A stretch of 64,000 nt of DNA from Pavona decussata (lineage: Eukaryota): positions 372,001 through 436,000 of the forward strand of contig CDRNST010000018.1 of the NCBI GenBank assembly GCA_977016875.1, written 5' to 3'. Position numbers and translations under genes: made by a program. Of the stretch, positions 1,836 through 64,000 are shown one piece after another; the first letter of the stretch is position 1; each line of letters opens with the position of its first letter. The notes under the pieces are model-generated. The model was given only the letters and a program-made list of their open reading frames with translations, searched no databases and had not been told where the DNA came from.

Positions 1836-1857
1836 CCCCCACCTTTTTATTTTTATT

Positions 1858-23553: not shown

Positions 23554-23566
23554 AGTGTCTCTTCTT

Positions 23567-39398: not shown

Positions 39399-39534
39399 TT
39401 CCCCTCAGGGAAGAAATAATCAGCTAAAAACAATTGAAATTGAATTGAACTTTGTGTCTCTCTCTCCCCATAGGATGTATGTAGAGGCAGGACACTGACA
39501 GGACAAGTCCCGGATCTGATGGCCACTAAAAGAA

Positions 39535-39595
39535 AAACCACAAGGGATATAGGGCTAAGGCAATTTTTCCGTTGTTGAGGGGCGCAAAGCATTTT
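39535..39595 (+). promoter_or_regulatory. U1 proximal upstream region (candidate PSE near -59 to -40)
   Basis: Conserved before all three U1 5' ends (24917-24967 partial, 39535-39595, 44602-44662). CCAC..AGG(G)CT occurs at the same offset before U2. PSE identity is inferred from position only. Confidence 0.45.
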
Positions 39596-39613
39596 ATACT
39601 TACCTGACACAGG
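39596..39613 (+). ncRNA. U1: U1 snRNA 5' fragment (nt 1-18), interrupted
   Basis: ATACTTACCTGACACAGG after the U1 upstream region. Confidence 0.9.
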
Positions 39614-42250: not shown

Positions 42251-44352
42251 CAGGCAATGTGATTAACACGCTCCCCGTAGGCGATCTTTCTGTCACTTCG
42301 ACAAAAGATATCCTTTGCGATTGTCACACATTTTCTTCTAAATTATATTCAGCTGAACCTGTTGACCTTCCCAGCCAAGATTGGCTTTAAGCTAACCTTT
42401 ACCGGTCGCTGACATCTGAAGATCAGCAGAAATGCGAAGGCCTTCCAACACTCTCGGAGTGTTATGAGGCTTTGGGCCAAATATCATCTGGCAAATCGCG
42501 AGGTGCCGATGGACTTCCGGTGGGATTTTATCGTCGTTTCTGGGGTTTGCTTGGCCAAGATTTAGTTGACATACTAAATTACTCTTTTACTCAAGGGGGA
42601 CTCTCTGACTAACAACGTCTCGGCATCATTCGTCTTCTATTTAAGGATGATGATCACTTGACGCTCAAAAACTGGCGTCCTATCTCTCTGCTTAACACGG
42701 ATTATAAAATATGCACAAAGGTTCTCGCTAATCGGTTATGCAAGGTTATTTCCCTTATCCTCTGCCAGGATTAAACTTGCGGGGTCCCTGACCGCAGTTT
42801 TTTTGAAAACTTGTTCCTTATTCAGGACACGATTGACAACGTCAATCACAAAGAGCTCTCGGCGGCTCTTATCAGCTTAGACCAAGAAAAAGCTTTTGAC
42901 AGGGTTAACCATGGCTTCCTTCGGTGGGTTTTAGAACATTTTAATTTCGGTCCTCACTTCAGGCGGTGGGTTATGATTGCATACACCAATATTAAATTGT
43001 GCGTTACTAATAATGGTTAGCTTTTGTGTCCTATCTCCCGGAGCATTGTGTCCATCAAGGTTGCCCGCTTAGCCCATTGTTGTATTGCCTAGTGATCGAG
43101 CCACTAGGGCAGGCTATACGTTGTGACTCGAGTACTGAGGGAATTTCAATCCCTGGCGCCAGCGGCAAACAGAGCAAAGTGTCTCAGTATGCCAATGATA
43201 CCACTCTAATATTAGCTAACAAGTTTACCATTACTAAAGCTTTAACCACTATTAACATTTTTGAAAAAGCCACTGGTTCTCGCCTCAATACACAGAAGAC
43301 TGAGGGCTTCTGGATAGATTCTAGCAAGGGCAGACCACCTGGCCCGGTGGACATCACTTGGGTTACCGACAAGCTTAAAATCCTTGGCGTGTATTTTGGC
43401 GTGAACTAGTGAACTTGATCGATCAACCGAGGCTCCGTTCGGATTCGCCGTTCGTATGGCCTGTTCCCTTGCGCTGGTTTTTAATCGGATTGGGCAGGTC
43501 ACTTGAAGTGTCTAGACCAAATTTATCCCCTTTTGTTTTTTTTTTCTTTTCGTTTTTGCTTTTTTGTTTGGCCCATTTTTCTTGGGAATTCCCTTGATGG
43601 GTTAATACAATTGAACAGCAGGGGGGGAGGGTTTAGGTTAGGATTTGGAGACCCTTAGTTTTTTATTTTGTCGCCTTTGCCGTACACGTCTAGAGTCTCT
43701 TTTTTCCATAGGTCCGCCTATGGCTTTTTTGTAGTCAATTCACTTCTTCCACCTTGTTATTAGCTTAACTGCATAACATTGTAAACTCCTGTTAACCATT
43801 ACTGGAGGAACCGTGTTATTGCTTAACTGCTTGGCATTGTACACTTGTAACCCACCTTGAGGATTGGCGGTCAAATCGCGTTATTCACCTACCTTAATGA
43901 TCGGAGGTCAAATCGCGTTAACTATTTATTTCACCTTGACAATGGGATAGTCAAATCGCGTTACCTTACAAGTTACTACTGTGGACCAAGTTCCCAGAAT
44001 TATTGTGGACATAGCTTCGAAACTGATTAACCAAGCACCAGTGCTGATTTACGACTGTTTCCCAAGAGAATTCTGTAGACAAAGCTCCGAGATTTTGCTG
44101 TGCACACACCTCCGAAATATTACTGTCACGGAAGAAACACTGCGCTGAATTTGCATAACCCTTGGGAATTGCGATCATGAGCATTGACACCTTTGGAACT
44201 TTTGAAATGGACTGGGCAGGGATTTAGAACATTGGACAATGCTTTTATACCGATGGAGACACTTGCTTTGTTAAATGGATAGACCCAGAAAAATTGCAAA
44301 ACTACCTAGAAAAATATAAAATAAAGGCTACACAAAGTGGCCGTAAAAAAAA
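42251..44352 (+). mobile_element. Lineage B element 3' half (RT and 3' UTR), ending at the U2 target
   Basis: RT homologous to 2974-3916; AATAAA at 44320; A-tail then GTACCTGTTCTT. Confidence 0.9.
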
Positions 44353-44504
44353 GTACCTGTTCTTATTACCTTAATATCTGATACGCTGCTCATTGAGCAG
44401 CTCATATATTAAACTGATTTTTGGAACTGGGCTGTGGAAAAGAGGCTTGCCTCTTCCCAGCCACGGGTTGCTAAGATATAGCACTACCTCCGAGCACAGC
44501 CCAC
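44353..44504 (+). ncRNA. U2: U2 snRNA 3' part (nt ~36 to end), diverged
   Basis: Colinear with 39249-39398; Sm site intact. Confidence 0.92.
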
Positions 44505-44662
44505 TTAATTGAACTTTGTGTGTCTCTCTCCCCATACGATGTATGTAGAGGCAGGACAGTAGTGACAGGACAAGTCCCGGATCTGATGGCCACTTAAAGT
44601 AAAACCACAAGGAATATAGGGGTAAGGCAATTTTTCCATTGTTGAGGGGCGCAAGGCATTTC

Positions 44663-44680
44663 ATAATTACCTGACGCGGG
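44663..44680 (+). ncRNA. U1: U1 snRNA 5' fragment (nt 1-18), left end of the split gene
   Basis: ATAATTACCTGACGCGGG after the U1 upstream region. Confidence 0.88.
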
Positions 44681-47600
44681 TTGCTTGGCCGAAGGCCCTA
44701 TCCTTTTGCGGAGAGGTTTTGGTTGAGCTTCCTTGGTAAGGATCGCCTCCACATGCTCCTTAGGCGTGTTTTGGTGGATCTTCATTGGCTGGTCACCCAT
44801 CCATTTTGTGGACCTGCGGATCAGTTCCTAACTTGCGTAAGTTTCCTTTGCTCACTGGGAGTGGCTCTCCCATCCCTTTTTGGGCCCCGCCCGTCAGGGC
44901 TTAACTTTTTTTTTCTTCCTTTTTTTCTTTCTTGTGTGTAGCTAGTCTACTCATTCTCGTACAGTTGTTGGGGTTTCCCTACGGTGTTTATCGTTTTGAT
45001 ATTGCCAAGGCTGTTTATGATCAGTTTTCTTCTGCGCATTCAGTGCAGTCAATTCAGGTTCTCCTGGGTGGCGTTTGTAAAGTTATGTTCGAGTCCCCGG
45101 AGTCTAAAAATTCTTTACTTGCTCATCCCACGTGTGTCATTAATGGTTTTGAGTGTCAAGTTTTAAACCATGCTCAGCGTTCTATCCAGGTTCAGGTCAA
45201 TCATTTCCCTGCTGAGGATGATGTTGCGCCCATGTTGGCTATTATGCGCTCCTATGGTGAAGTTGTGGATTATCGGTTCCAGGTTTGGCCGGGTATTCCT
45301 AGTGTGAATACTGGCACTTGGCCCTTCTGAGATAAAGCTCCAGCGTGACATCCCAGTTCTTTGCTGTGTGGGAAGTATCATCTTAAGACCTGGTATTGGG
45401 GTCAGCGCCTTGAGTGTAATATTCGTCAGGCAATCACAAAGCGGCTGATTGCGAGCTTGGTGGCAAATGTCGTCATATGAAGTCTGATGGCCATTTTGCA
45501 CCTGATTGTCCCATTCCTTGGGGTCATGTGGGTGCCCCCCCTGCCCCTGCTTCTGCTCTTGCCCTTGACCCTATTCTGGCTCCTGCTTCAGCCTCTGCCG
45601 CGGCTTCTGTTTCTGGTGCTGGCGCCCCTGAACCTACTCTGGTCATGGATTCCTCTGACACTTGTGACAATTAACTTAATGAGCTGGACAGTCAGGCTTC
45701 CCTCTCGCATGCTCCCTCTGCCGTTGATGAGGTTGATGTGGCGGACAGCGACATTCTTCTGGTTGCTGATTTACTTGCTTCCAATGATTGGGATATTACT
45801 GATAATGATAATACTGATAATGAAATGGAAAGGCTAACCAGTACTAACGTAGTTATTAGTGATGAAGTTACTGATAATGTAGTTTGTAATACCAATGATC
45901 GCGATAGGGTCTCTGGTGTTACTTGTAGCGATATAAGTAGTGATAAAAGTAGTGATAAGAATATCGGTGAAGTTACTGATAATGTAGTTTGTGATAGCGA
46001 TAGGGTCTCGAGTAATAGTTGTAGTGATAAAAGTAGTGCATTGCATGTCCGAAACTAGTTCTGTTACCCCTAACAACGTCGTGGGTGTATTGGAGGTTGG
46101 TCAAAATCCTGATGTGGACATGGATCCTCTGTCTGTTAAGCGTGCGGCCCCAGATGATTCATCTGAGCCCGACAGCGTGGATAGTGCTCCTATGGGTCCG
46201 CCCCCCCCCCCCCCCGAGTGTGTGTCCAAAGCTAGGAAGTCGAGACCGGTTGTTGTTGCCCCCCCTGCCAGGCGTGATCAGAGTCGTTCCTCTGTTGGCA
46301 GGACTCCTGCTCCTGGAAGGCATTCTTTTCCTCAGCAGTCAGTCTTCGCTCTTGAAGTCTACTCCCCAGAAGCGGTGATGGCGCCTGTGTCTGCTCTTTT
46401 TCTTCTTTGCCTGATGGCCTTGTCGGTCCTTTCTATTAATTGTAATGGTCTTCGTGACCCTCAGAAAAGATCTGGTTTCTTGCAGTGGTTGCGTGGTCTT
46501 CCGTGTACTGTTGATGTGGCTTGTGTTCAGGTGGCGCATTGTGTTTCGTCTGCGGAATATGAGTCTTGGTTTCGTTCATCTGGCCTGTCTTCTGTTGTGT
46601 CCCCTGGTTCAAATAAGTCCTGTGGTGGTGTTGTCCTTTTTCGTCCTGCGTTGTCTTTTGTTGAGTCATGGTCTGACTCTGATGGTCGTTTTTTGCAGTG
46701 TGAGTTTCAGTTCCGTGACAAATTGTTTCGTGTTGTTTCTCTGTATGCCCCAAATTGTAACCCTGCAAGACATCAGTTCTTTGAACTTGTCTCGTCCTTT
46801 GTCGATTCTTTTATTTCTACGGTTCTCTGTATACCATCTTTGATCGTGCGCTGGACCGTTAGAGCTCTGTTGTCTCCGACTATTCTCGTGATAGCTCGGC
46901 TGCGCTTGTTCAGCTCTTTGAGGAGTGTTGTGTCATTGATGTCTGGCGCTACCTGCAACCCTCCTCCTCTTGTTTTACGTGGTTCAGGCCTGATGGCTCT
47001 CTGTCGTCACGTATTGATCTAATCGGTTGTCCTTTTGTGTGGGTGTCCTCTGTTTCGTCTTGCGATATTGTTCCTTGTCCTTTTTCGGATCATTGTGCCG
47101 TTTTGTTTTGTGTCCATTCCCGATGTCGTTTCCCTTGGCCCTGGTTTGTGGAAGCTTAATGTTTCCATTCTTGAGGAGGAGGTCTTTGTTGGTCTTTTCA
47201 CCAATTTTTGGAAGGACTGGCAACGTCAAAGCACCGGTTTCCCTCTTTGGCAAAATGGTGGGAGGCTGGTAAGTCTGGTATCAAGGGGCTTTCCATTCGT
47301 TTTTGCTCCTTGCGGTCGTCGGCTTTCTCTGTCAAGAGAGATATTCTTTCCAAGTTGGCTTCGCATCTCAAGGAGAAGGTTGATCCTGGTTTTTTGTCTT
47401 TGTTCTGGACTTACCAGTCTGTCTCGTGTCAGCTGGCTGACCTTTACAAGGAGATTGCTTGGGGTGTGCAGGTGCGCGCCCGCGCACGTTGTCCCGTTTT
47501 TCTACTCTTTGCCCTGCTCTTCTCTGTCGTCATGTTCTTTTTGGTTTTTCTATGCTGAGCTTTGTGTTGCACTCTGCATTTTTGTTTATCTGTTAAATTT

Positions 47601-48372
47601 GCTTAAGTACTTTACTTGGCGTGCCCGAAACGATTTTCGTTTCCGTGGTGTTCGCCATGGTGCGGTCATTGTTATTGAGAATACCAAAGCGAGAGCTAAA
47701 TTCAACCTCCCGTTGTTTTTCAAGCGTTTTCGTTCTTCTCGCCGTCGTCACTTTTATCGCCAGTGGGGAGCCTGCAGTATTGTCGGTTCTGTTGATGGTG
47801 TGTTAAGTCTGGCCCTTTGGTCCCCCTTTTTTCTGCCCTGAGTGAGTGTGTCTTGTCCTGGTCGCCTTAGTTGGTTGTACTGGGCTTGCCCGAGTGTGTG
47901 TGTCTTTTGGATGTCCTTTAGACGGTCGCCTTAATTGATTGTACTGTCCTTGAGTGGGTGTGTATCTTGGATTTGTCATTTAGATGGTCGCCTTTGTTGG
48001 TTGTACTGTCGGACGGTCGCCTTAATTGGTTGGACTGTCTTTTGAGTGGGTGTGTTTTTTGGTCGTGTCGCTTGAGCATGTTTTTGGATGGTCGTCTTTG
48101 TTGGTGGTACTGTCTTTGCTTGAGTGGGTGTGTTTGTTTCTTGTGCCTCCCGCGTTTTAATTTTGTTCTTTTGTCCTGTCTTGTCCTGTTTTTGTTTGTC
48201 TTGTATTGTGTTTGTAGGGAGCGGGGTTCCATCCCCCGGTGACGTTTGACGTGCTGGTGCAACTCCCGTTTAAGGTGAACCCATTGTTGTGTGATGGGCT
48301 AAGTCGTATTTGTCTGGCAGGGATTGCACTCACCCTACCGGGGGCCTGGCCATTCACCTTAAACACGAAAAA
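44681..48372 (+). mobile_element. U1-targeting Tx1 element 1 (type II 5' end); ORF1, APE from 46414, RT deleted at ~47490, 3' UTR intact
   Basis: MALSVLSINCNGLRD, SLYAPN, GLWKLN; short A-tail followed by U1 target duplication. Confidence 0.9.
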
Positions 48373-48388
48373 CCTTACCTGATGCAGG

Positions 48389-51300
48389 TTTTTCCTGTTA
48401 GGGTAAGTATCCGGACCGTTTAAAGTCGAGAGACTTGGTCCCTGCTGTTTGACTTTCGGTGGATTTTCCCTTGTGGTAGGATTTTTGCTGTTTTGCCGAT
48501 CAGGTTATTTGGCGCGCCATGTGCTCCTCGGGCCTTCCTTCTCTTGGTAGATTGTGGGCCTTGTGGGGGTGTTACTGCGCTGTTTTGTTTTTTTTCTAGC
48601 GTCCTTCCCTTTTGGGTTGGGGGCTATTGTTATTTGGTGCCTAGTGTGCTTCCCGGGCCTTCTTTTCCTTGCTGAATTCCAGCCCTTGTGGAGGTGTTCC
48701 TGCACTGTTTGTGGTCAAGTGTACCACATTTACTATAAACTGTAGGTGGTTTAAGAACCACCAGCGTGAAAACGTATGTGGTGGTCACGGTTCCCCCATT
48801 ATTACTAGTAAGTGGTCAAGGTACCACAAGTGTAAGGTTAAGCTATAATATTTAAAGGAATATTTAATTAATGGAAAGTTAAAGGATATAACTATGTCCA
48901 ACCAAAAAACTGGTGTTCTCCAGCAAAAATTTTCCCTCCTCTGCTACTAAGGAGGATATTGCTAAAAAATTCCACATGGAATTTCAGGGGCGATTTGAAA
49001 TTTTTGCAATCCAGGTTAAGCCTGGTAATGTGATTGCGGTGACGTCTAGGTCTGCTGAGGCTAAAAAAGCGTTGACTAAAAATCAGTATATGGATGTTGA
49101 TGGCATTGTTTGCCCCGTTCTAAATTATGTACCTTCCACTACTCTGGTAATGGTTCATTACTTCCCGATTGAGGCTGATGGTAAACCCCTCTACAACCAG
49201 TTAAGTCAGTATGGTCAAGTTGTTGGGTCTCGATTTCAAGTTTGGATTCACCTGGGTGAGATATCTACTGGAACTCAGCTCTACAATATGCATTTGAACT
49301 GCGATGTCCCTCGTTCCCCCACGGTCAAGGGTCACTGTGTTAAAACTTGGTACAAGGGGCAGCACCTTACGTGTGATATTTGCGGTGGGTGCCATAAGGC
49401 CGCCCAGTGTGATCTGCGTGGCAAGTGTCGTCGCTGTAAATCTGAAGGCCATTTTGCTAAGGATTGTCCTACCTCGTGGGGCAAAAGTGCTCCTGCCCCA
49501 GCGCCTACTACAACTGGGTCCGATCCTACCCCAGCGGAAGCCGCAGGCCAAAGTGAGGAGACTTCTCAGCCTCCGGTTGTTGCTGTGGATAGTGCGAGTG
49601 TTGTTGAAGATGGTGCCAATCAGCCTACCGGTGCTGTGGATAGTGCGGCTGGTGCCAGCCAGTATATGAATTGTGCGGTTGATAGCGAAGATGGTGCTAG
49701 TCAGTCCATTCTTGCTGGTGTTGAAGTGCCAGCTGTTCAGCTTGTCGATAATAGTGGTGATGTGGGTGTTTTGAGTGGTAGTGGTCAGTCTGTTGACCTA
49801 CGGGATAACCAATTGGATAAATTACCATCTGCGGATGTCGTAGTTTCTGATGTTCCAGTCGTTACTGTTTTGAGTGAAGGAGACAGTTTGGCAAATGTTG
49901 ATTTGGGCGATGTTTTGAATTCAGGTAAGTCCCTTGGTCATCTCTCCGTTTCCCAGCGCGGTGGTGTTGTCTCTTTGTCCTTTAAGAAGAGTGACCGCCT
50001 TGACCCCCGTAATTGGCGTCCAATCAACCTGCTTAATGTGGATTACAAGATTGCGTCTCGTGCTATCGCAGCCCGCCTCCTTCGTGTCATCCATCTGGTA
50101 GTTGCTAAGGATCAGACGCGCAGTGTTCCCGGTCGCTTTATTGGGGAGAATGTTGCCTTCCTGAGGGATGTCGTTGACTTCTGCTCACTCTCTGGCTCTC
50201 CGGTGACGATCCTCTTGTTGGACCAGGAGAAGGCTTTCGATAGGGTTGACAGGGGCTTTTTGTGTAATACCCTCGAGGTCATGGGGTTTGGTCCATCCTT
50301 CGTTGACTGGGTGTTGCTCTTTTCTTCTAATGTTGAGAGCTCGGTTAATGTGAACAGTTATCTCTGGGATTTTTTCTCCTTGTCTTGTGGGGTGCGGCAA
50401 GGCTGTCCGTTATCCCCCCTTCTCTATTTTCTTTGGCGCGGAGGTGATAGCCTGTAACATCCATGTTAATCCATCTATTCGTGGTCTGTCCCTACCTGGC
50501 TTCGATTCCCCCCTGCCATGTATCTCGCAGTATGTGGATGATACCACTCTGGTTGTCACCAGTGATCCGGCTATTACAGAAGTTTCCGAAGTCTACCATG
50601 TTTTTGAGAGTGGTTCCAGTGCAAAGCTGAACCTCTCCAAGAGTGAAGGCCTCTGGCTGGGGTCATGGAATGGTCGTGTGGATGCCCCGGTTGACATCTC
50701 CTGGACCTCCGTGAAGATAAAAGTCCTTGGTGTGTTTATTGGTCCCAATGACTTGGAGGAAGCAAATTGGCATTCATGTATCACTGCCGTCAAGAATGTT
50801 TTAAGCTCTTGGCGTCAGCGCTCGCTTTCTCTCTGTGGGAAGGCTTTGGTCATCAATGCCCTTGCCCTAGCCCGCATTTGGTATGTGGCCTCCTTAATCC
50901 ATGTTCCCTCCACTGTCATTAAAGAGATCAACTCTTTGGCCTTCAAATTTTTCTAGAGGGGCAAGGGGGATCTTGTTCCTCGTCATGTTGTTGTTCAGCC
51001 CTTCTCCCAGGGTGGCCACTCAGTTGTTGATTTTTTGTGTAAGTGTAGGGCTTTCCATGTTCAGTGCGTCTGTCGGTTGTCCGTGTCCCCTTCCTCGTGG
51101 GTATCATTCCTGACTTATTGGTCTTTTGTGTTTTCCTATCCATTCTTTTTTGATGTTAGCTCCATGCCCCCCTTTTACCGTTCTCTGTTTAAGGCTTGGG
51201 GCGCTTGTGATGGTTCCAAAACGGCCTCATCTCTCGGCATCGGAGTAGGTATTGACTGTTGCCCAGTTGAGTCCATCACCACCAAATCGGCTTATCTTTA

Positions 51301-52257
51301 CCAGGTGTTAGATACTGCCCGTCCCGCACATTGTTAAGTCAAGTTCTTTCCTACTTTTGGTCTTCTGTATTGGCCTGCTACCTGGAGGCAGTTGTTTTTC
51401 TTTCCCCTTGATCGCTCTGTTATTGATCTGAATTGGAAGCTGGCCCACAGGGTTTTGTACACGGCTCAGCGTCTTGCCTCCTTTGGTTATGACCTCTCTA
51501 CTGTGTTTTTGTACTCACCCTGTGGAGTCCTCTGAGCACCTGTTTTTTTGTTGCCCCTTTGCGGACAGTGTGTTGTCATGGGTGCAATCGTTGATGTTCT
51601 CCGCCTCTCCCCTCTGTCCCAATTTGCTCCTTCGTCACCTCCTGTTTGGCTTCTCAGAGGATGAGCTTCTTTGTCTCCCACGTTTCTTTGTCTATCTTCT
51701 TGGCGTCTGCAAGTTCTTCATTTGCTGTGCCCGTAATGATTTTTGGTTTCGTGATGTTCGCCCTTCAGCTATTGATGTCATTGAGAGTGTCAAGGCCCGG
51801 GTCCATTTTTACTTGCCTTTGTTCTTTTGGTGGGTTTCAGTCCAGTCGCCGCCAGTGGTTTTTTGTTCGTCATTGGGGTGCCCATGGGGTCGTGGCCTCT
51901 ATTGTGGATTCCCGTTTGGTTGTTCACCTCTAGTTCCCGGCCCTTTCTGTTGTGTCTCTGCTTGCCAGAGCGAGTGTGTCGTCCTGCTAAGCTTCCGTTT
52001 TTGAGTGAGTGTGTCTGTGTTTTGCCTCCCGCGTTTTTAACTTGTTTTATTGTCCTGGCTTGTCTTGTTTGTGTTTGTCCTGTAGCAATGTTTGTAGGGA
52101 GCGGGGTTCTATCCCCCGGTGACGTTTGACATGCTGGTGCACCTCCCGTTTAAGATGAACCCCTCGTTCGTCTGTTTGTTGGGATGAGTCTGTCTGTCTG
52201 GGGGCCATTGCACTCACCCTACTGGGGCGCCAGCCATTTGCCTTAACCATGAAAAAA
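48389..52257 (+). mobile_element. U1-targeting Tx1 element 2 (type I 5' end); ORF1 joined to RT by deletion of APE
   Basis: CDICGGCHKAAQC, CRRCKSEGHFAKDC, NWRPINLLN, LDQEKAFD, YVDD. Flanked by CTTACCTGATGCAGG (48374-48388) and CTTACCTGACGC (52258-52269). Confidence 0.92.
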
Positions 52258-55200
52258 CTTACCTGACGCTCTTGTCTGGCCGGAGGCCCTACTCTTTTGT
52301 GGAGAGGTCATTAGCCATTTAGCTTGGGTAGTGGATCGCTTCCTCGTACTTTTTGGGCGTGGGATTTGTTGCTTATTGGCTGGTCATCCTCCAGTATGGA
52401 GACCTTGGGATTTAACCTTAATGTTTGGATCTTCATTTTGGTGAGCGGTTTTTCTTTCTTTTTCTCATCTTTTTTTTCTCTGGGGGTTGTTGCCTTTCGG
52501 TTTGGCGTTTATCACTATGCCGCGTGGCGCCTTTAACCGGACGGTGACGCTCAAACTTGAGTGATTCCTGTCATCAGTTTCTCGTGCTGATACTGTTAAG
52601 GCCATCAAAGATCATTTTGTTGGATATACTATTTTGTCTGTTCAATTCACCCCTGGTAATCGTGCTCAGGTTACTTTTGAACGTGCTGAGCAGAAGGAGT
52701 TTATTGAAACCCTTGAATCCGTGTCTCTTGGTGACATTGAATGTAGGGTCGTTGGTGGGGGGCCTCGCCCGCAATTTGGGCATGTTTTCCAGTATCCCTT
52801 TGAGGCGGATGATAATCTTCTTATGAGGAATTTTAAGAAGTTTAAGGATGTGCTGGGTCTCAGTCATCAGCATTATCCGGATCATAATTAAATTTGCACT
52901 GGTGTCTGTTTATTGCATATTGTTCGTTCAGCTCCCATTCCTCGTAATGCAGATGTTGGGGGCTGGGCTGTTAATGTTTGGCACAAAGGCATGTCCCCTG
53001 AGTGCTATATCTGTGGGCAGGGTCATGTTGCTAAGGATTGCCCTTTCCGCAGCAAGTGTCGGCTGTGTCGTCAACCTGGGCATATTAGTCGTAACTGTAG
53101 GAATGTGCCGTCTGCTTGGGATTCGTCAGAGCCTGGTGTTGATCCATAAGTGTATATGGATCCTACCCCGGCTGAGGCGGCTGCATCTGCTTCTGGTTCT
53201 CTTGGTGTGGCGTCTTTTTCTTCTTCTGCCATCGTGCATCCTACCAATGCTGTTTCTTTCCACTCAGATGGATGTCAATTGTCCTGTGGATGTGGTCTCC
53301 GCCCCTACTGATGCCGCTGCACCCTCCACTGGCTCTCCTGAGGCTGCGTTGTTTTCTTCGTCTGAAAGTGTTTCTGTTGATTTGAGGGACAATGAGTTGT
53401 CCCCTGATCTGTTTTCGCATGATGACCTTCCCGTTGGTGAAGGCACTACCGTCTTGTCTGGCTCTGATAAATTGGCAGGGTGTGTCAGCTTCACTGTCAA
53501 TGAGTTTGGCAGTGAGGCTAGTCCCTCTGTTTTAAATTCTGCATGTAATTCAATTATTGATGTTACTTCCGCTATAAGCAGCGGAGTGACTTATTCTTGT
53601 TCTGTTTCCTCCGCTAAGAAGAGTGGTGGTATTAATACTAAAGTTTGTAATGCTGTTACTGATAATTCCAATGTAAGCAGCGGACGAATTAATGCTAGTG
53701 ATAAACTTAATGATAATCCCACTGAAAGCAGTGGGGGGGGGGGGGGTTAAACCTAGTTCTGTTAATTCCGCTAAAAAGAGCGGTGGTGTTATTTCTAAGG
53801 ATGATAATAACTTAACTAGTAATCCCGCTGTAAGCAGCGGAGGGTCTAATCGTAGTGATAACTTTACTGATAATCCCGCGGTAAGCAGCGGCGTTTGCTA
53901 TGACAATACTGTACTTTCACCTGCCCCTTCCTCGGTCCTGTCCCAGTCTATCTTGCCTGTTGTCCCCCCTTTGCCTTCCTCTGAGGACTTTCCTGTGCCA
54001 CGTGGTCGTGCTCCCCGGCGTACTTCTAAGCCTACTCATCCTGATCATAGTCGTTCTCGCTCCTGGTCTGGCGCGTCAGGTCGGTCTGAGAAGCGCCCTG
54101 CTGCCTCTCATAAGATGCCTGCTTATGTCAAGTCTGTTCCTTCATGCCCTTAATTTGCTTCCTTTATGGCAGTCTTTTTCTTTTTGATGGCTCTGTCCAT
54201 AGTCTCGCTCAACTGTGACGGGATTTGTGACAATACTAAGCGTGCTGGTCTTGTGCAGTGGTTACGTTCTTTGGCTGTGGTTGCTATTGTTATTTGTCTT
54301 CAGGAGACACATTTTTCCTCAGTTAGTGAGTGTTCGTCTTGGTTTGCTTCCTCTGGTTTGTCATGTGTGTTGTCTCCTGGTTCTACCAGGTCTTGTGGTT
54401 GTGTGATTTTGTACCGTCCTTGTTTGTCTCTTGTTCAGTCACGATGTGATTCTGACGTTCGCTTTTCTTCAGTGTGAGGTTCTCCTTCGTGGTCATTCAT
54501 GTTGCCTGTCTTTATGCACCAAATCGTAATTCTGCACCAGATGAATTCTTTAATGATATCTCTTCTATTGTTGACCCTACTGTGCAGACCGTTCTCTGCG
54601 GCGACTTTAACACTGTTTTTGATCGGTCGCTTGACTTGTTTGATTCAGTGGTGGGTGATCAATCACGCAAGAGTTCTGTTGCTCTTGGCCAACTTTTTGA
54701 CTCCTGTTGTGTCCTTGACATCTGAAGGTATCTTCACCTATCGTCCTCTGGCTTTACCTGGTCCAGGTGGGATGGCTCATTGTCTTCTCGTATTGATCTT
54801 GTTGGTTGTCCTTATTCTTGGGTTGCGTCTGTGTCGTCTTGTGAGATATTTTCTTGTCCTTTTTCTGATCATTGTGCTGTCCAATTTTGCGTTTCTGTCC
54901 CTGATGTTGTTCCACTTGGTCCGGGTTTATGGAAACAGAACACCTCTAACCTTGAGGACTACGCTTACATTGAGTCTGTATCTTCCTTCTGGCTTTCCTG
55001 GAAGTGCCGCCAGTTGGATTTCCCTTCCTTGGCCGGGTGGTGGGAGGAGGGGAAGAGTCGTATCAAGGGCCTCACTATCTGTTATTGTGTTTCCCGTGCT
55101 CAGTTGTGCTTGCAGTCTCGTGATCTCCTTGTTCCTCTAGTTGATCAACTCAGTCCCGTGTGGACAGTGGTGTTGTTTCTTGCATTGGGCCATACCGGTC

Positions 55201-57042
55201 TGCCTTAGCTCAGCTTGCCAAGTATGATCTAGATGCTGTGGGGGTGCGCAGGTTCTTTCTCGGGTAAGATAGGTTGAGGAAGGTGAGTCTTGGCTTACTT
55301 CTTTCGCCTTGAGAAGTGGGCTGCTGATCGTTGGATCTCTGCTTTGAGAGAAGATGATGGTTCTGTTATTTCTAATCCTGATCAATTATGTCGTTCTTTC
55401 TCTGGTTTCTATTCTTCGTTGTTTACCTGGTGTCCCACTGATCCTGTTGCTTGTGATCTTCTTTTGGATAATTTGTCCTCTGTCCTCCCTTCTGACCAGC
55501 CTAAGGTCTGTGATGGCCCGCTTTCCCTTGGTGAATGTTATTCTGCCCTTTGTGGGATGGCTAAGCGTAAAGCCCCTGGGCTGGATGGCCTCCCATTGGA
55601 GTTCTATGTCAAATTCTGGAGTGTCCTTGGTTCTGATCTTGTTTCTGTTTTGAATTCGTGCTATGATTCTGGTCGTTTGTCTTTCTCTCAACATAGGGGT
55701 GTTATTGCTCTTTCTTTTAAGAGGGGTGATCGCCTTGATCCTCGTAACTGGAGGCCGATCACCCTTCTTAACGTTGATTATAAACTTACATCGCGTGTAA
55801 TTGCTGGTCGACTGCTCAAAGTCATTCATCTTGTTGTCGCTGTAGACCAGAAGTGTGGTGTTCCTGGATGCTACATTGGTGACAATGTGGCTTTTTTGCG
55901 GGACGTTGTTGATTATGCTACCTTGTCCAACGTTCCTGTTGCTGTTCCTACTCTTCACCAGGAAAAGGCCTTTGACCGTGTTGATTAGGATGTTATGCGG
56001 GCAACCTTGCTCAAGATCGGTTTTGGCCCTTCCTTTCTTTGGTGGGTTGACCTGTTTTACTGCGGAGTTTAAAGTTGTGTTAATGTTAATGGTTACCTTT
56101 CCTCGTTTTTTCTTTGTCTCGTGGTGTGCTTCAAGGTTGTCCTCTTTCTCCTTTGCTGGATGTTCTTGAGTCTTAAGTCCTGGAGGCCAATATTCATGTC
56201 AATCCCCGGGTCAAGGGTCTTTGTCTTCCTGGTCTTTCTGAGCCACTTTCTCCTATATCCCAATACACTGATGCCACCTCTCTATTTCTCACGTCTGATG
56301 ACTCTATATTGGCCACCTTTGAGGTTTATGCTGTTTTTGAGAGAGGTTCTGGGTCCAAGCTCAATCAGGCTAAATCTAAGGGCTTGTGGCTTGGTCCCTG
56401 GTCTGGTCGTGTTGATCCACCGGTTGCGCTTGATTGGTCTTCCACTAAAGTGAAGATCCTTGGTGTTTTCGTTGGTCCTGGGTGACCTTGAGCAAAATAA
56501 CTAGCCGCCGCGCATTTCCACTGTTGATGTTAGGTATAGGAACTATAAGTACGCGCCTCTCAAGGGACTGGACACGAGATGTGTCGTCAAGATGACAAGT
56601 GACGTAAGGAGAAGCCATGTGCGTGCTCGAGAAGCAAAATAGACTCGCGTTGTGAAAATAAGTTGTGAAACCGTAATTTAATATCGTAAATACTCTTGGA
56701 AAACACCAAGCAGTGTGGATTTTCTTGTGTAACATTCTGGGGGCCTGTCCGGGAGATTTTTCTCGAAGAAACTTGATGGAAATGTACCCGTTTTGACGAT
56801 CGATTGCTTACTGTGTGCGAGGACTCGCGTTTGTCGCCGCCATTACGCATTCACTTTGGATTTCAATGGACAACGATTTATTAACAGGATTTAACTGGTT
56901 GTAGTTGAAGCGGACATTTGGTGTGGACAGTTTGGCAAAAGATAGTGGAGCCTGAATTTGAGGCCAGGGAAGGTAGGAACATTGTTTTATTGGACTTTGT
57001 GCATGTGGAAATCTGTTCGTGTTGTTTACAAGTAAAATTGAA

Positions 57043-58378
57043 ATGGCGGAGGAACAACTGATTCTTCTGGATCGCAAAATTTTGTCGCTGGACCTGAGTG
57101 CGTTTTGTGAATTTGCTCTTCATGCTAAAGTTGAAAAGTCGGCAGTAGAAGGCAAGGGGAAATTAAGTGTTATTCGGTCTATCAGACGAAATATTGAGGA
57201 TTCATTCGAGAAGTTGTCTGGCGTTGATCAAATTGAATTTGTTAAGGGGTTAATTGCACAGTTGGGTCCTGAAGAAGCTCAAAAAAGAATTGGGTGATTT
57301 AGAGTCTAAGCAGCAATTAGTCGAGGAACAATTGGCCAAAATGCAGAAAGAAAAGTTTCCTGCCTCAGTGAAAGACGAAGACACGATCAAGTTTCCTGCC
57401 AAGGGGGTTGAGCAAAGCATATTCCGCAGGGATTTCAAAATACAAGGAGTGGTGGGTGACCCTGGTCAGAAAGATAAACTGGGTTATCAAGCTCTAATAT
57501 CCCAAATAGAATCAGGGCTTGCCAAGGGGTACTCAGACAAAGAAGTAGTTAGTGCCGTTGTTCATGCTGTGCAGCCAGGCCTGCAACTAAGAAGCTACCT
57601 AGAGAACATGACTGACCTGACCCTACCCAGGCTGCGTAAAATTCTTCGCTTCCATTTTCATGAGAAAAATGCCACAGAACTTTACCAGCTTCGAACAAAC
57701 ATTGCCCAACAACCCAATGAAGACCCTCAGTCATTTCTGATGAGAGCACTCACTATTAGGCAAGAGGTAATTAGTGCTTCAAAAGAGTCCGATAGTGGGG
57801 TTAAGTACGATGCCTCCTCGGTGCAAAGTTTGTTCCTGCATGCCTTGGAAACCGGTCTTGCTGACGAAACCATTCGTGCAAAGATAAGACCACTCACTCA
57901 GAACCCAAAAGTCGCAGATGAAGACCGCATTGGAGCAATGAGCCTAGCTATATCTGCAGAAGCTGAGCGAAGTAATAAGTTCAGTTTTACCAGCAAGGGA
58001 AAGTCTGCAAAGGTTCTCACCGTTGAAGGTGCAGTGGAAGCAAACACGAAGAAGGAGTCGCAGAAGGACTCACAGGTCCTAGCAACACTAAAAGCTGTAC
58101 AAGCGGAGCTGGCCACAGTGAAATCAGAAGTTAAAACTCTTCATGACGTAGCAAATAACCAGAAGGCAGACACCATGGCACCTGGTCCTACTGGGAGGGG
58201 AGCGAGGGCTGGAGCAAGACCACCTGGTTGCCAAGAGTGTAGAATGAATAGGAAAGGTGACCGATGTCCACATTGCTGTCTCTGTGGAGGCTTGAACCAT
58301 ATTGCCCGCTACTGTCAAACCAGGCTCAGAAGCTATCCGGGAAACGCATCCAGGCTACCCCCGCGGGACAGGGAGTAG
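57043..58378 (+). pseudogene. gag: gag-like ORF with C-terminal CCHC knuckle (one frameshift near 57285)
   Basis: MAEEQL start; QQPNEDPQSFLMR major-homology-like motif; CCLCGGLNHIARYC. Confidence 0.8.
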
Positions 58379-58380
58379 CC
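58339..58380 (+). promoter_or_regulatory. -1 programmed ribosomal frameshift signal
   Basis: In-phase G_GGA_AAC (58339-58345), 7-nt spacer, hairpin GGCTAC-CCC..GGG-A-GTAGCC (58353-58380). Confidence 0.85.
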
Positions 58381-58407
58381 TTGCCAGAGAAAGAGAAGTC
58401 CCACCAG

Positions 58408-58530
58408 TGTAGTGGTTGCCTGGAGTTTGATTGCCGTAAACAGTTGCTACAGTGTTCAGCCTGCCAGTCTGTTCGATATTGTTCTGAGCATTGTCAAAAG
58501 GTTCATTGGCCAAAACATAAAGTGTTATGC
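58408..58530 (+). CDS. MYND-type zinc finger in the -1 (pol) frame
   Basis: CSGC-x11-CSAC-x5-CSEHCQKVHWPKHKVLC matches the zf-MYND pattern CxxC..CxxC..YCS..CQ..HW..HK..C. Confidence 0.88.
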
Positions 58531-60144
58531 AAAGCAATCAAAGAGTTCTCTGAGAGAGAATCGTCTAAAGAAAAGTAGTTAGGAGATGCACAAGATAGAG
58601 ATGGTATGTGGTCTGTAAGGAGCTGGGCCTGATCAACCCACTCCAGGATTTAAGAAGCAAGGAATCATAAACAAAAAAGGCCACTTTCGTAAAGTTTTGT
58701 TCTGTATTGCATGCCAAATGGGAGAGAGGGGAGAGTGTTAGGTATAGGAACCATAAGTACGCGCCTCTCAAGGGACTGGACACGAGATGTGTCATCAAGA
58801 CGACAAGTGACGTAAGGAGAAGCCATGTGCGTGCTCGAGAAGCAAAAAAGACTCGCGTTGTGAAAATGAGTTGTGAAACTGTATTTTAATATCGTAAATA
58901 CTCTTGGAAAACACCAAACAGTGTGGATTTTCTTGTGTAACATTGAGAACACTCTTGCTGCTTGGAAGGGCCGTTCCTTATCGTAGAGGGGTAGAGCCCT
59001 TATGATCAATGCCCAAATCTCTTGTTCACATGCGCTCTTGGGTTTTGTCTGAACTGTGCAATTTTGGTACGAAGTTCCATCCGCTGCAAGATGAAGCCAC
59101 TTTCGTGGATGAGCAAATAAAGGTCGAAGTACTTCGGTATAAGTTGTATATTTTCTCTTGTCACATTAATGTGAACCTAGCTCAATTATATCATCTTGCA
59201 GGCTAACTGATGAACAAAATAATGTTTTACGCATTACTGAAAAAGGCCACAACAAGGTCAGCTGGCTGGTAAAGAACTGCACTTAGCCAGAAGGGGGTGT
59301 GTGTGGTTTGTTACGTGCCAAACGCTTCCCGTGGATTTCCCCAGCTGGGAACATTTTAGTACTCGTGCCTCAGTTTGACCGTGAGTTTCTTCCAACATTC
59401 CAGGGACACGGCTCAGACGGCGGCAAAAAAGGCACCCGATTTGAAATGAAGTTTGTTTTCAACTAAGGCCGGTGTCTCAATAAATGAACTCCTCTGTAAA
59501 TGAGCTACCCAGGAGGGACCGCACATCATTCTCCTTGCCATATGGTAAGGCAGGTAGGCGAGAGCTTAAGTTTCAAGCAAATTTTAGCGAGGTTTTTGAA
59601 GTGCTGTCCTTAAATGACCGGCCAAATTTCATTGAAATTCAACTTGTAGTTTCCTACCTTTCCATTAACATAATACAGTGATGTACGTGGACCAGCTGCC
59701 GAGAGATAAACCGCTCAAAACAGCGTTTGGAAGCACTGAAGAGCATTGAAAACACAACAAAACACACCGGGTAAGCCTTTTCAGACTTAAGTATATTTTT
59801 GTTGGGTTTTTTAGGGAAAATTGTTGTCTAAATTTCGATTTAATTTTAACTCCATACAAACTCTTAAATCACGCTTGCATGGTAACCTGTGTCACATACG
59901 CTTTGGTGACCTGTGGTAGCACTGGAGTGCTTGAGTGAGTGTGTTTTTGCTTTTTAACTTGTTCTATTGTCCTGTCTTGTCCTGTTTTTGATTGTTATGT
60001 ATTGTGTTTGTTGGGAGCGGGGTTCCATCCCCCAATGAGGTTTGACGTGCTGGTGCCCCTCCCGTTTAAGGTGATGTTTGTATTTGTCTGGTGGCCATTG
60101 CACTTTTCCACTGGGGGGCCAGCAATTCACCTTTATAACAAAAA

Positions 60145-60306
60145 ACTTACCTGACGCAGGAGGTACTGTGATCAAGGAGGCAGTCCTCTCAAGGTGGTGC
60201 CCTTTCATTGCACTTCGATTGGGTTGACCCTTGTGATTACCCCAAATGTGGGTAACTCGAGCTTATAATTTCTGGTAGTGGGGACCTGCGTTCGCCCTAG
60301 TCTCCG
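60145..60306 (+). ncRNA. U1: U1 snRNA nt 3 to end, right end of the split gene
   Basis: ACTTACCTGACGCAGGAGGTACTGTGATCAAGGAG..CATTGCAC..AATTTCTGG; followed by the same downstream flank as 25132. Confidence 0.93.
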
Positions 60307-60869: not shown

Positions 60870-60942
60870 TCTCCTGTAGCTCAGTGGTAGAGCATCCGAA
60901 CTAGTAATCGGAAGGTCTTAGGTTCGACTCCTGATAGGAGCA
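60870..60942 (+). tRNA. tRNA-Thr(AGT)-like sequence, probably a tRNA-derived repeat or pseudogene
   Basis: A box TAGCTCAGTGG, B box GGTTCGACTCC, loop CT-AGT-AA; extra base in the anticodon stem and imperfect T and acceptor stems. Confidence 0.6.
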
Positions 60943-61008
60943 CTCGGATTTCTTTTTTCCGAGTATGCCTGCGTCACTTTCTAGAATAATCATCATTCTT
61001 GTCATGAT

Positions 61009-64000
61009 TGTTATGTAATTATCCAGTTGTCAAAGGTAGTCCATTTAATTATCCAATCAATCATACCATTATATCAGGTTACAGCTTTGTACTTTAAAGA
61101 TTAAGACACGATAGAATAAATTCATTCTTCTGTCCAAACTTGTTGTCCGATCTTAACATGGTGTCAGACCTGGGATCTCTCTAAAATGGATAAATTAGAC
61201 CCTCCTGATCCACTCTCCTTCGAAGGAAATGTACGAGAAAACTGGAGAAGGTGGAAACAAGAATTTAGTTGTACCTAGTAGCAACTGAGAGTGATGGAAA
61301 ATCCGACAAGATCAAGTCATCTATTCTACTCACTTGTATTGGGAAAAGGGCGCGTGAAATTTACAACACCTTCACTTTCCCGAGTGACGAGGACAAGATG
61401 AAAGTCAGCTCGATCCTAAGCAAATTCACAGCATACTGCAATCCTCGAAAGAACACAACCTTTCTACGTTATCAGTTCTTTTCCTACAACCAACAGGATG
61501 GACAGCCTTTTGATGATTTTGTTACCGAACTAAAAAAACGTGCTGAGGAATGTGCGTTTGCCAGTCTGAAAGACTCTCTGATTACTGACAGGATCGTGTG
61601 CGGAACGACTGACAACAAACTTCGTGAGCATTACCTACGAGAAACAGATCTCAAGTTGGAGAAGGCCATTCTACTTGGTCGCGCTGCTGAGGAATCGAGA
61701 AAACATGCTTTAGAGCTTAAACATGCATCGAAACCCACTCCAGTCAACATGGTCGGCCAAGGGGCGATACCCAAGACAATCAAAGGCGCGACATCAGAGT
61801 ACTTTGCTAACTGCAAATTTTGTGGTCGTGGACATAATCGTGGAAAGTGCCCAGCATATGGAAAGACATGCAACGAGTGTGGTGCTGCCAATCATTTCGC
61901 ACAATGCTGCCCTAACAAACCCCGTAGATTTAATCCGCAACAAGCACGCAACAGGCCGATTCGTGAAGTCAATCGCCAGCCTGACATCACAGAGGATGAA
62001 TGGGAGAATTTTGTCGGTGCGATAACTGTCGAAAGCCTAACGGAAGAGAAAGATGTCAACGAAACGACTCTACACTCAAACAATCCGGAGGATGAGGAAC
62101 TCGAATGGTCTGTCGTTTTGGAATCCAATGGAACTAACATTAACTATAAGCTTGACACTGGCAGTCAAGTTAATGTTCTTCCGAAAAAGGAATGCACTAA
62201 ACTCCCCCACAAGCCTAAGCTGCATCCAGCAAAAGTGAAGCTCACCGCTTACAATGGCACTGACATACCAGTCGTCGGCAAGTGCATCGTTACTCTGAAG
62301 AACGGACATCAAGAATACAAAGTTCTCTTCATTGTGGCAGAAATGAATTCTGTGCCACTCCTAGGACTGAACACTTTCAAGAAACTCTGCCTCATTAACC
62401 GTGTAATGACTGTAGATTGTGAGAACTCTAATTTAATTAATGAGTATAGTGATTGCTTTGGTGAAATAGGTAGCTTATCTAAAGTTCACCACCTAACCAT
62501 AAATGGGAATTTCTCCCCTGTTATACAAGCGCCTAGGAAAGTTCCCTTTGCCTTGCGTGAGAAATTGAAAGATGAGCTTGACCGCATGGTGCACCTGGGC
62601 ATCATAGATAAGATCGACGGGCCTACTGATTGGGTTTCTAATCTCGTGATCGTTGAGAAACCTAATGGAAAATTGCGTGTATGCCTAGACCCTCGCGATC
62701 TCAATCAAGCGATAAAGAGGCAACATTATCAGCTGCCCACTGCCGAAGATATTCTTTCTCAAATGGCCGGTGCGAAGTATTTCTCAAAATGGGACGCGTC
62801 TTCGGGCTACTGGCAACTAAAGCTTGACAAAGAAAGTTCAAAACTGCTCGTATTTCACACACCATTTGGTCGGTATAAGTTTAAGCGCCTTCCGTTTGGC
62901 GTTAATTGCGCATCGGAAATCTTTCAAGCCGAAGTGACGGAAATCTTAGACGGATTAGAGGGATGTGCAAATGCACAAGATGACATCGTTATCTGGGGCG
63001 ACACGAAAGACATCCATGATCGGCGGCTCAAGAATGTTCTCTCAAGGATTCGCTCTTCCGGTCTCAAATTGAATAGATCGAAGTGTATCTTTGGATCTAG
63101 CCAAATAACGTATCTCGGTCAACTCTTGACCTCCGATGGCGTAAAAGCCGATCCACGGAAAGTATCAGCGATTCTCAACATGCCTGCTACGGAGAACAAG
63201 TCCGACCTTCAGAGATTTCTCGGCATGGTCACATACCTCGGAAAATTCGTGCCGAATCTTTCAGAAGTTTCTGCTCCGCTCAGAGTATTGTTGGAAAAAG
63301 ACACTGCGTGGTCTTTTGATACTCCCCAACAACAGGCATTCCAAGAATTGAAGTTGATGATAACCAACACCCCGGTCCTCAAGTAATTCGACCCGAAACT
63401 GCCAATCAAGGTATCATCTGACGCAAGCAAAAGTGGTCTCGGTGCCACTCTAGAACAAAAACATAGTGACTGCTGGTATCCAGTAGCATTTGCAAGTCGA
63501 TCAATGACCTCATTCGAAACCAACTATGCCCAAATTGAAAAAGAGATTCTCAGTATTGTTTTTGCCTGGGAGCGTTTCAATGATTTTCTCTACGGTCAGC
63601 GTTTCCTAGTCGAAAACGACCACAAGCCCTTGAAAGACATCTTTCAAAAACCAGTGCTCAAATCTCCTCCTCGAATTCAACGCTTCTTACTTCGCTTACA
63701 GAAGTACCAGTTCACGATGAATTACACTCCCGGAAAGGACATGGTGGTCGCAGACACGCTAAGTCGCGCATATCTCAGCAACACATCAACACCTGAAATT
63801 GACAACTCTGACATGACAGGCTATGTTCATTTCGTAATATCGAATCTTCCCATTAGTGATGACAAGCTTCGCGAGTTTCAGCGCGAAACCTCACGCGATC
63901 CAGCTTTACAGAAACTCCGCGAGTATACAGAAAACGGATGGCCCCAGGAGAAGACGTTGACTCTCTAGTACAACCATTCTACAAACACCGTGACGAAATC
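61009..64000 (+). mobile_element. Ty3/Gypsy LTR retrotransposon (single gag-pol frame, Mag-like), running off the window
   Basis: 5' LTR ~61009-61158 (TGTTA..TAACA; start uncertain), tRNA-Leu-like PBS TGGTGTCAGACCTGGGAT (61159-61176), two Cys/His knuckles, LDTGS protease, RT and RNase H. Confidence 0.93.
61186..63968 (+). pseudogene. gag-pol (Gag, PR, RT, RNase H) with a frameshift near 61265 and a stop at 63384-63386
   Basis: MDKLDPPDPLSFEGN start; LRVCLDPRDLN, RLPFG, AQDD, DASKSGLGA, NYAQIEKE, DHKPL, ADTLSR. Confidence 0.9.

Follow-up and report, generated by a model that had tools for sequence, protein, structure and literature searches.

How does a single gene for U1 small nuclear RNA (snRNA) come to be interrupted by several retrotransposons lined up head to tail? 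The question is raised by a stretch of 64,000 nucleotides (nt) from Pavona decussata (GenBank assembly GCA_977016875.1, contig CDRNST010000018.1, positions 372,001 to 436,000), here called the window, where three long interspersed nuclear elements (LINEs), E1, E2 and E3, stand between the first nucleotides of a U1 gene and its remainder, and a fourth, E0, follows another U1 start further upstream. An initial annotation, made from the letters alone, had taken them for retrotransposons of the Tx1 group specific for U1. Having compared the window with related loci from other assemblies, we propose that the four belong to a family of LINEs of the L1/Tx1 group, equipped with an apurinic-like endonuclease (APE), for which the U1 snRNA gene would be the home target; we put the probability of this at roughly 80%.

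The interrupted gene can be followed piece by piece on the forward strand. A spacer with U1 promoter-proximal sequence (44510-44680), delimited by direct reading and upstream alignment, ends in U1 nt 1-18 (44663-44680, with one mismatch, C4 to A), and E1 (44681-48373) begins at the next nucleotide. E1 and E2 (48389-52257) are separated by U1 nt 4-18 (CTTACCTGATGCAGG, 48374-48388), E2 and E3 by U1 nt 4-15 (CTTACCTGACGC, 52258-52269), each of the two pieces being preceded by a run of A. E3 likewise ends in an A-run (60140-60145), after which U1 continues from nt 4 to its 3' end (60146-60306); this downstream half, which carries several CpG-type changes, is recognised by the Rfam U1 model with 131 bits at 60143-60306. 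A fourth 5' junction lies at 39613/39614, where a U2-U1 spacer (39404-39613) closes with the U1 promoter-proximal region and U1 nt 1-18 (39596-39613) and gives way to E0. About 75 bp 5' of both occupied U1 copies can be aligned to the corresponding upstream DNA of intact U1 genes, both within the window and in a second locus, L005; E0 and E1 lie directly behind conserved U1 promoter-proximal DNA, as the initial annotation had said of the first element. Its junction coordinates were also borne out by direct reading, except that it let U1 resume after E3 at nt 3: the resumption stands, and it is placed at nt 4 (60146), since the A at 60145 may equally belong to the A-run.

The other of the two U1 genes that Rfam finds in the window is unoccupied and full length (24968-25131, forward strand, 140.4 bits) and gives the reference for the target site, ATA|CTTACCTGACGCGGG. 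When up to one mismatch is allowed, the 12-mer CTTACCTGAYGC occurs six times on the forward strand of the window against 0.42 occurrences expected, and none of 100 shuffles reached six. Rfam further identifies two U2 genes damaged at their 5' ends (39226-39403 and 44316-44509) and, on the minus strand, two 5S genes. The stretch represents a decayed portion of a linked U1-5S-U2 array; in L005 (assembly ERZ26692694), such an array is seen in its regular 2-kb form.

None of the elements is complete, a correction to the initial annotation. Their losses were measured against L003, a 5.2-kb contig with an intact relative, the closest one to E2, whose open reading frames ORF1 and ORF2 encode 482 and 1185 amino acids (aa); this contig ends inside both untranslated regions (UTRs) and carries no flanks. 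E0 (39614-42300; tblastx, tblastn and junction reading) has a 5'UTR which we call type A and remnants of ORF1, APE and reverse transcriptase (RT). It is 3'-truncated at about 42260-42355, its coding part ending at ORF2 aa ~626 relative to L003, and is joined there to another LINE, which lacks its 5' part and runs up to U2. In E1, which has a type-B 5'UTR, tblastn against L003 placed ORF1 (about 44974-45863), APE (about 46378-47489) and the ORF2 C-terminus (about 47501-47793), followed by 3'UTR hairpins (48213-48372); roughly 700 aa (ORF2 aa ~376-1077) are deleted, and with them the RT. In E2, again with a type-A 5'UTR, ORF1 (48904-49911) passes directly into RT at 49885; deleted relative to L003 are the C-terminus of ORF1 together with ORF2 aa 1-494, including APE (Pfam, translation and tblastn). 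Its RT and C-terminus (49885-51930) are frameshifted and 80-88% identical to the intact ORF2 of L003, and its 514-aa ORF contains zf-CCHC and RVT_1 and no Exo_endo_phos according to Pfam. E3, of type B, is colinear with L003 as far as ORF2 aa ~797 (52270-56527) and over this length contains ORF1, APE (Exo_endo_phos at 54166-54477), RT and several frameshifts; an inserted long terminal repeat (LTR) element separates this part from the remaining ORF2, the 3'UTR hairpins (60009-60145) and the A-run (58943-60145, direct reading). All four copies are dead, and the locus is a decayed graveyard.

What remains of them is diverse, as the initial annotation had noted. Pairwise identity among E1, E2 and E3 is 64-69% over coding DNA and rises to 80-90% in the final ~130-260 bp, and the two types of 5'UTR alternate, one being common to E0 and E2, the other to E1 and E3. 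Given their low coding identity, E1-E3 are separate insertions of different subfamilies, not duplicates.

The nature of the elements can be read from their intact relatives. L005 carries an element with an ORF1 of 437 aa (CCHC) and an ORF2 (protein P0121) of 1172 aa, in which Pfam finds Exo_endo_phos at residues 6-230, RVT_1 at 517-765 and zf-RVT at 1005-1054, that is, the N-terminal APE, central RT and C-terminal Cys/His motif of the L1/Tx1 group. Residues 3-866 of P0121 align with human LINE-1 ORF2p (E = 1.7e-80), versus about 1e-17, over the RT only, for R2. The CCHC knuckle characteristic of Tx1-clade ORF1 (zf-CCHC) is found in ORF1 of E2, L003, L005 and L006, and within the window APE is seen in E1 and E3, RT in E2 and E3. 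The predicted proteins place the elements among APE-type LINEs of the L1/Tx1 group, as first annotated. The Tx1 clade proper is a candidate assignment, reached indirectly through source names: the closest named proteins, 66-69% identical to the E2 RT, are Stylophora pistillata entries entitled 'Transposon TX1 uncharacterized 149 kDa protein'. As a side observation, T strongly prevails over A on the LINE coding strand at 46000-56000 (AT skew -0.26 to -0.45). L1-type elements are usually A-rich on the sense strand, the opposite of what is seen here.

Is the U1 gene entered by the family elsewhere, too? In the regular array of L005, an intact element stands between U1 nt 18 (8120) and A-run|CTTACC (13953/13954), after which a whole U1 gene follows, and a second copy ends in the same way at 2099/2100. 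In L028 (assembly ERZ25067879) we read, in order, U1 nt 1-18, a 1-kb derivative, U1 nt 4-18 and a full-length type-B element. A census was taken with a 21-nt core of the 3'UTR, a probe that carries no information on flanks, as the initial annotation had proposed. Run on JGI metagenome contigs it returned 19 loci, which together with those found earlier (the window, L005, L006 and L007) hold 28 copies, or 24 once one locus present in four samples was merged and one flankless copy dropped. Within the scan alone, 10 of 17 independent copies with resolved flanks are inserted in U1; overall the figure is 15/24. Every one of the U1 insertions (15/15) is in sense orientation and has the 3' junction A-run|CTTACC, in line with the nick near U1 nt 3 that had been suggested for the window. 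Four of these copies run into U1 bodies, and in most others a U1 piece of 10-15 nt is followed by the 5'UTR of a further copy. Head-to-tail stacks are thus the rule among U1 insertions and are not peculiar to the window; stacks of different families also occur in L013, L015-L017, L019, L024, L025 and L028. Tx1-like elements with other 5'UTRs also follow U1 nt 4-15/18 in L013 (601-4031) and L025 (3343-7172); their APE is ~29-37% identical to that of the L005 element, and more distant lineages may share the U1 site.

Several observations weigh against the U1 gene as the target of this family. Nine independent insertions lie outside U1, namely in a 5S array, in microsatellite or transposable-element context and in various unique sequences. 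In a tree built from the final ~900 nt they are intermixed with the U1 copies, with 6-7 changes of state (L008 and L021, for instance, group with L013, and L023 with L016). One relative, represented by protein P0124 (L006), sits in a 5S array. Short-read metagenome contigs may over- or under-represent copies in arrays. In Stylophora pistillata (L027, LSMT01000110.1, 13148-13411), finally, a relative with an RT 66% identical to that of E2 ends in a non-U1 flank ~140 bp 5' of a tRNA gene; two further tRNAs lie nearby, and this relative may belong to a tRNA-cluster-associated branch.

The 5S-resident copies (L006 7680-13880; L029 809-6680 and 7983-13850), with an ORF2 about 67% identical to that of the L005 element, lie near the 3' end of 5S with a target deletion of ~6 bp. 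All three have an identical junction, next to a 5S flank with the same mutations, and may represent one event amplified with the array. A division into separate U1 and non-U1 sublineages was considered and is not borne out by the interleaved tree; L006 with L007 and L009 with L018 may be non-U1 branches.

How specific, then, is the family? A site-specific LINE family in Kojima's sense has one sequence in >20% of its flanks (PMC4494074), a threshold that U1 clearly exceeds both in the scan (10/17) and overall (15/24). Strict specificity of the R2 or R1 type, with virtually all copies in the target, is not found, the nine non-U1 insertions being interleaved with the others. Most off-target copies are 5'-truncated or very short, and full-length copies are the rule at U1. 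The census data point to U1 nt 3/4 as a strongly preferred home site that is not exclusive; of the U1 specificity first claimed the strong preference holds, and the strictness does not, about 40% of flank-resolved copies being elsewhere.

The full-length copies outside U1 turned out to be informative in another respect. The copy in L023 is flanked by a target-site duplication (TSD) of 15 bp, after which come an extra G and U1 nt 1-13 (5' end G + ATACTTACCTGAC), and that in L021 by a TSD of 37 bp, followed by U1 nt 4-18 (5' end ATTACCTGACGTGGG). In the 5S array of L006 and L029 the 5' junction reads 5S ...CCTG + ACGC, where ACGC are the next four U1 nucleotides; this looks like a remnant of the same U1 leader. 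The simplest reading would be that the U1 piece travels with the element RNA, transcription having begun at U1 +1 under the U1 promoter, and the family indeed appears to be transcribed from that promoter. An extra G is the expected trace of a reverse-transcribed cap. The initial annotation had regarded the U1 pieces between stacked elements as a 12-15-bp duplication that regenerates the target. This cannot be demonstrated, since full-length off-target copies carry the same U1 segment, and the pieces may be leader rather than TSD. The occurrence of U1 segments at unrelated loci, which would have spoken against U1 targeting altogether, is in part a fact (L021 and L023, partly also L006 and L029). 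Since the 3' flanks enter whole U1 bodies, transcription from U1 +1 accounts for it better than an absence of U1 targeting would.

The same off-target copies show where the endonuclease may cut. Their TSD-defined nick sites are GATA|CATC, CTTA|CATC and AATA|CCTC (n=3), as compared with CATA|CTTA in U1, and the offset of top-strand cleavage varies among off-targets (+15, +37 and about -6). These three sites suggest that the enzyme itself prefers no more than a short motif for nicking, ATA|C or TTA|C, and that the remaining specificity comes from elsewhere.

A cycle can be proposed on this basis. The endonuclease would nick the bottom strand opposite U1 nt 3/4 (top strand ATA|CTTACC), and reverse transcription would be primed at the nick from a short A-run at the 3' end of the RNA; such priming would explain the end structure observed in all copies, A-run + CTTACC in sense orientation. 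A full-length copy placed behind U1 nt 1-(13 to 18) and the promoter would then be transcribed from U1 +1, as the off-target leaders suggest, and for this reason its RNA would bear the U1 leader. In the next round the complement of the leader in the cDNA could pair with the upstream end of the target, giving a precise 5' junction and a full-length insertion. The retained or regenerated CTTACC... piece could be hit again, and elements would pile up head to tail in the manner observed at several loci. Conserved, covarying hairpins of the 3'UTR would probably be the handle by which RT holds its own RNA, and by which derivatives devoid of ORF2 are mobilised in trans.

Other explanations of the locus have to be measured against the same evidence. 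That E2 passes from a zinc knuckle to RT without Exo_endo_phos might suggest LINEs with a restriction-like endonuclease (RLE) of the Utopia/R2/NeSL type, a reading that we regard as ruled out for all practical purposes: comparison with the 80-88% identical L003 shows that E2 has lost ORF2 aa 1-494 internally, APE is present in E1, E3, L003, L005, L006 and L028, and the C-terminal domain is zf-RVT and not an RLE. The train might also have arisen by tandem duplication or unequal crossing-over of one unit made of U1 and an element, or during assembly. The region is, after all, a repeat array, and the 5S-resident copies of L029, 7174 bp apart with the same mutated flank, do resemble array duplication. 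Their divergence in coding DNA, the two 5'UTR types and the different internal deletions nevertheless set E1-E3 apart, and the stacks of several families listed above are comparable. There are no N runs in the window, and the locus is matched at 100% identity, over 21.5 and 12.1 kb, by contigs bearing the window's protein P0001 in two separate ENA metagenome assemblies (ERZ25073751 and ERZ25073805), which disfavours mis-assembly. We consider an origin by duplication or artefact highly improbable.

More directly opposed to U1 targeting is the idea that the U1 pieces are a U1-derived head which the elements acquired by template switching, their association with U1 genes being secondary. As a last point against our proposal, the leader could indeed have come from template switching onto U1 snRNA, as Kojima put forward for the U1/U2 heads of SINEU (PMC4494074), and U1 nt 1-13 or 4-18 do open full-length copies at non-U1 loci (L021 and L023). 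A mere head would not account for 3' flanks that run into complete U1 bodies (window 60146; L005 2100 and 13954; L019), for 15 of 24 3' junctions reading A-run|CTTACC, or for conserved U1 promoter DNA as 5' flank. Moreover, the U1 pieces within stacks begin at nt 4, not nt 1, which fits a nick at 3/4 and not a jump onto the full leader, and the leader always ends at nt 13-18, as in U1-resident copies, a constancy that template switching leaves unexplained; we find this alternative quite improbable. Of another kind is the suggestion that the site is chosen mainly by something other than APE reading DNA, be it pairing of RNA ends (of the U1 leader, or of read-through U1 at the 3' end) with the target or tethering of the ribonucleoprotein (RNP) to active snRNA loci, APE merely cutting ATA|C-like sites. 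TSD-defined off-targets share with U1 only (A/T)TA|C, full length is the rule at U1 and 5' truncation is found in most off-target copies, and ATTGCAC forms the loop both in the 3'UTR and in U1 stem-loop II. On the other hand, those off-target sites are only three, no copy has a read-through U1 tail at a non-U1 locus, and the nick falls at the identical nucleotide in every U1 insertion, which alone would fit a sequence-reading APE like that of Tx1L or R1. Site choice of this kind is possible, and on balance somewhat unlikely.

Both ends of the element RNA have features that recall U1. The last ~150 nt of the 3'UTR can be aligned across 22 copies and fold into two hairpins, in which 11 of 24 pairs show compensatory changes according to RNAalifold (for example UA:11/CG:11 and CG:9/UA:9). 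Hairpin 1 is T-arm-like (GGGGTTCGATCCCC). The loop of hairpin 2, ATTGCACT, is invariant in 22/22 aligned copies and recurs as ATTGCAC in L027 and L028; some families have two ATTGCAC hairpins. ATTGCAC(T) loops lie at 48323-48330, 52207-52214 and 60097-60104 of the window and at 13148 and 13193 of L027. The same heptamer forms the loop of U1 stem-loop II (window 25032-25038), where it is the U1A-binding motif. The possibility that the 3'UTR is a captured piece of U1 was examined as well and found no support, the loop motif alone being shared: the Rfam U1 model gave no match in the 3'UTR of E1 or in L017 at E <= 10, and local alignment of eight 3'UTRs to U1 yielded only 8-11-nt matches, CATTGCACT(TC), that do not rise above shuffles (z -0.1 to 2.8).

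At the other end, type-A 5'UTRs contain GGTAAGTAT, which matches the consensus for 5' splice sites and is exactly complementary to U1 nt 1-9. The motif, (G)GTAAGTAT, is located at 39629-39637 and 48403-48411 in the window, at 8132-8140 in L005, at ~613-620 in L013 and at ~3971-3977 in L028. The hairpin that it forms with the U1 leader has an energy of -15 to -16 kcal/mol and, in three divergent copies, a z of about -2.4. Type-B 5'UTRs have GGTAAG or GGTGAG about 68 nt in and show no significant leader hairpin (z about -0.9). It is conceivable that the element RNA imitates U1 biology at both ends, with transcription from the U1 promoter, a U1 leader, in type-A 5'UTRs a 5' splice site GGUAAGUAU folding onto that leader, and an AUUGCAC loop on a covarying stem; we hold this to be doubtful, and the splice-site and U1A-loop features are leads, not findings. 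If functional, such mimicry could recruit U1 snRNP or U1A. It might thereby shield a 5-6 kb transcript of an snRNA promoter from early termination, or return the RNP to U1 loci, and tethering of that sort would supply the specificity which the short ATA|C nick preference lacks.

Besides LINEs with both reading frames, the family includes shorter derivatives. In units of ~2 kb (L014-L017, L021, L023 and L024) both UTRs and an ORF1-like ORF are retained, and there is no ORF2 match; those of the JGI clade with type-B 5'UTRs likewise match ORF1 and not ORF2. The ~1-kb unit of L028 (3933-4956) has a small ORF, for which no ORF1 or ORF2 match was detected. Common to the non-autonomous units (L014-L017, L019, L021, L023, L024 and L028) are the 5' leader, the hairpins of the 3'UTR, the U1 site and an arrangement in tandem stacks. 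Because they have the hairpins and the site in common with the complete elements, the ~2-kb and ~1-kb derivatives are probably mobilised in trans. They resemble HAL1, the ORF1-only half-L1, in what the ~2-kb copies keep and lack, and differ from it in coming from another LINE lineage and in retaining U1 preference and stacking.

In the full-text literature that we searched, no LINE in U1 genes is reported; Repbase Reports and Dfam lay outside that search and so may hold the family. The only mobile elements listed for snRNA genes in 2015 were Keno and Utopia in U2, Dada-U1 and Dada-U6 (PMC4640811), and the Tx1 targets collected in Figure 3 of PMC4494074 are U2, U5, 5S, satellites, microsatellites and transposons, U1 not being among them. 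We judge U1 to be a new target for a known kind of element, the site-specific Tx1-like LINE. Keno, of the Tx1 clade, occupies U2 snRNA genes of fish, frogs, lancelet and Hydra. Like the family described here, it is an APE-type LINE with ORF1 and ORF2 that enters tandemly arrayed Pol II snRNA genes in sense, at one fixed nucleotide close to the 5' end of the gene; its site is U2 nt 38/39, U2 resuming at nt 39 (PMC4640811). Keno-like copies are even found in these same arrays, at U2 nt ~30-39. The U1 family is distinguished from them by its target at U1 nt 3/4, by an RT about 45% identical to that of the co-resident U2 elements and by its sizeable off-target fraction. Flanked by U1, the family of E0-E3 is not a member of Keno, which is defined by insertion in U2.

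Mutsu (5S rRNA), Dewa (tRNA spacer), a U5-targeting Tx1 family and Tx1L (the Tx1D transposon) are further Tx1-like LINEs that are each aimed at a multicopy sequence (PMC4494074), none of them at U1. Mutsu and Dewa have a parallel in the close relative in a 5S array and in the Stylophora relative near a tRNA gene. Dada-U1, from zebrafish U1 genes, is the only U1-gene-specific mobile element named in the literature searched (PMC3706591, PMC4640811), and its subterminal repeats contain ATTGCAC, a motif present in U1. It is nevertheless a DNA transposon with a DDE transposase and a 6-bp TSD that inserts at GCGAAT in another part of U1, and its mechanism is unrelated. R2 and R1 in 28S rDNA have no promoter of their own and are transcribed together with the gene they sit in, as is proposed here for the U1 family. 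R2 employs an RLE as well as a self-cleaving ribozyme. That target-derived RNA ends sharpen the junctions of R2 and R1 is an idea cited in PMC4494074. Unlike them, the U1 family would borrow a Pol II snRNA promoter, and its RNA would start exactly at the +1 of the gene. SINEU, crocodilian short interspersed elements with heads derived from U1/U2 that are mobilised by Tx1-Mar, also have U1 5' sequence at the 5' end of Tx1-mobilised retroposons; their heads are ascribed to template switching and their target is a Mariner transposon, whereas the U1-family leader is tied to residence in U1 genes.

Site-specific LINEs serve as models for the choice of safe harbours by retrotransposons and as starting points for targeted gene insertion. 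A family aimed at U1 adds a target to this set, with intact copies in present-day coral-associated assemblies, and its cut falls inside the nine U1 nucleotides that read 5' splice sites. The off-target leaders that begin at U1 +1, one with a cap-like extra G, offer an argument, drawn from sequence only, for a LINE living off a Pol II snRNA promoter, and they bear on the origin of U1 heads in SINEU-type retroposons. There is also a gradient of specificity, the same families being full-length at U1 and mostly truncated elsewhere, which is useful for separating endonuclease specificity from RNA-guided joining.

Some other features of the arrays and of the window may be added. The U2 genes are occupied by other LINEs (window 39226-39403, 44316-44509 and 23500-23560; L005 19562-19600; L028 11794-11830). 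One kind of occupant ends at U2 nt ~38/39, the Keno/Utopia site, and lacks a long A-run at its 3' end (39250); a second kind does have an A-run, which meets U2 at nt ~36 (44353). To the latter kind belongs the 5'-truncated, Keno-like LINE that abuts E0 (42301-44352, forward strand): its A-run meets U2 from about nt 36 (44353-44509), and its 3' end is 77-83% identical to 22730-23511. At 23545-23556, an A-run and CAAGTGT are followed by the apparent 5' end of another element, so stacks may occur in U2 as well. The 5' part of a LINE (23557-24905, with an APE motif near 24700) breaks off ~60 bp 5' of the intact U1 gene at 24968, which retains only ~55 bp of the conserved upstream block and may be without a full promoter.

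The LTR element nested in E3 (56528-58942, forward strand) is 2.4 kb long. Its 207-bp TG..CA LTRs (56528-56734 and 58736-58942) are 96% identical, a purine tract lies 5' of the 3' LTR, and the TSD is the 4-bp TTGA (56524-56527 and 58943-58946); its 374-aa ORF (57254-58378) has no Pfam match. A tRNA gene (60870-60943, Rfam, 49.6 bits), whose anticodon could not be assigned by ARAGORN, follows the split U1 gene at 560 bp on its 3' side. Further mobile elements are marked by an APE+RT LINE at the left end of the window (84-3990), by an ORF with a GIY-YIG domain at 17212-18162, perhaps Penelope-like, and by a 705-aa ORF with aspartyl protease and RT at 61269-63386, the pol of an LTR retrotransposon.

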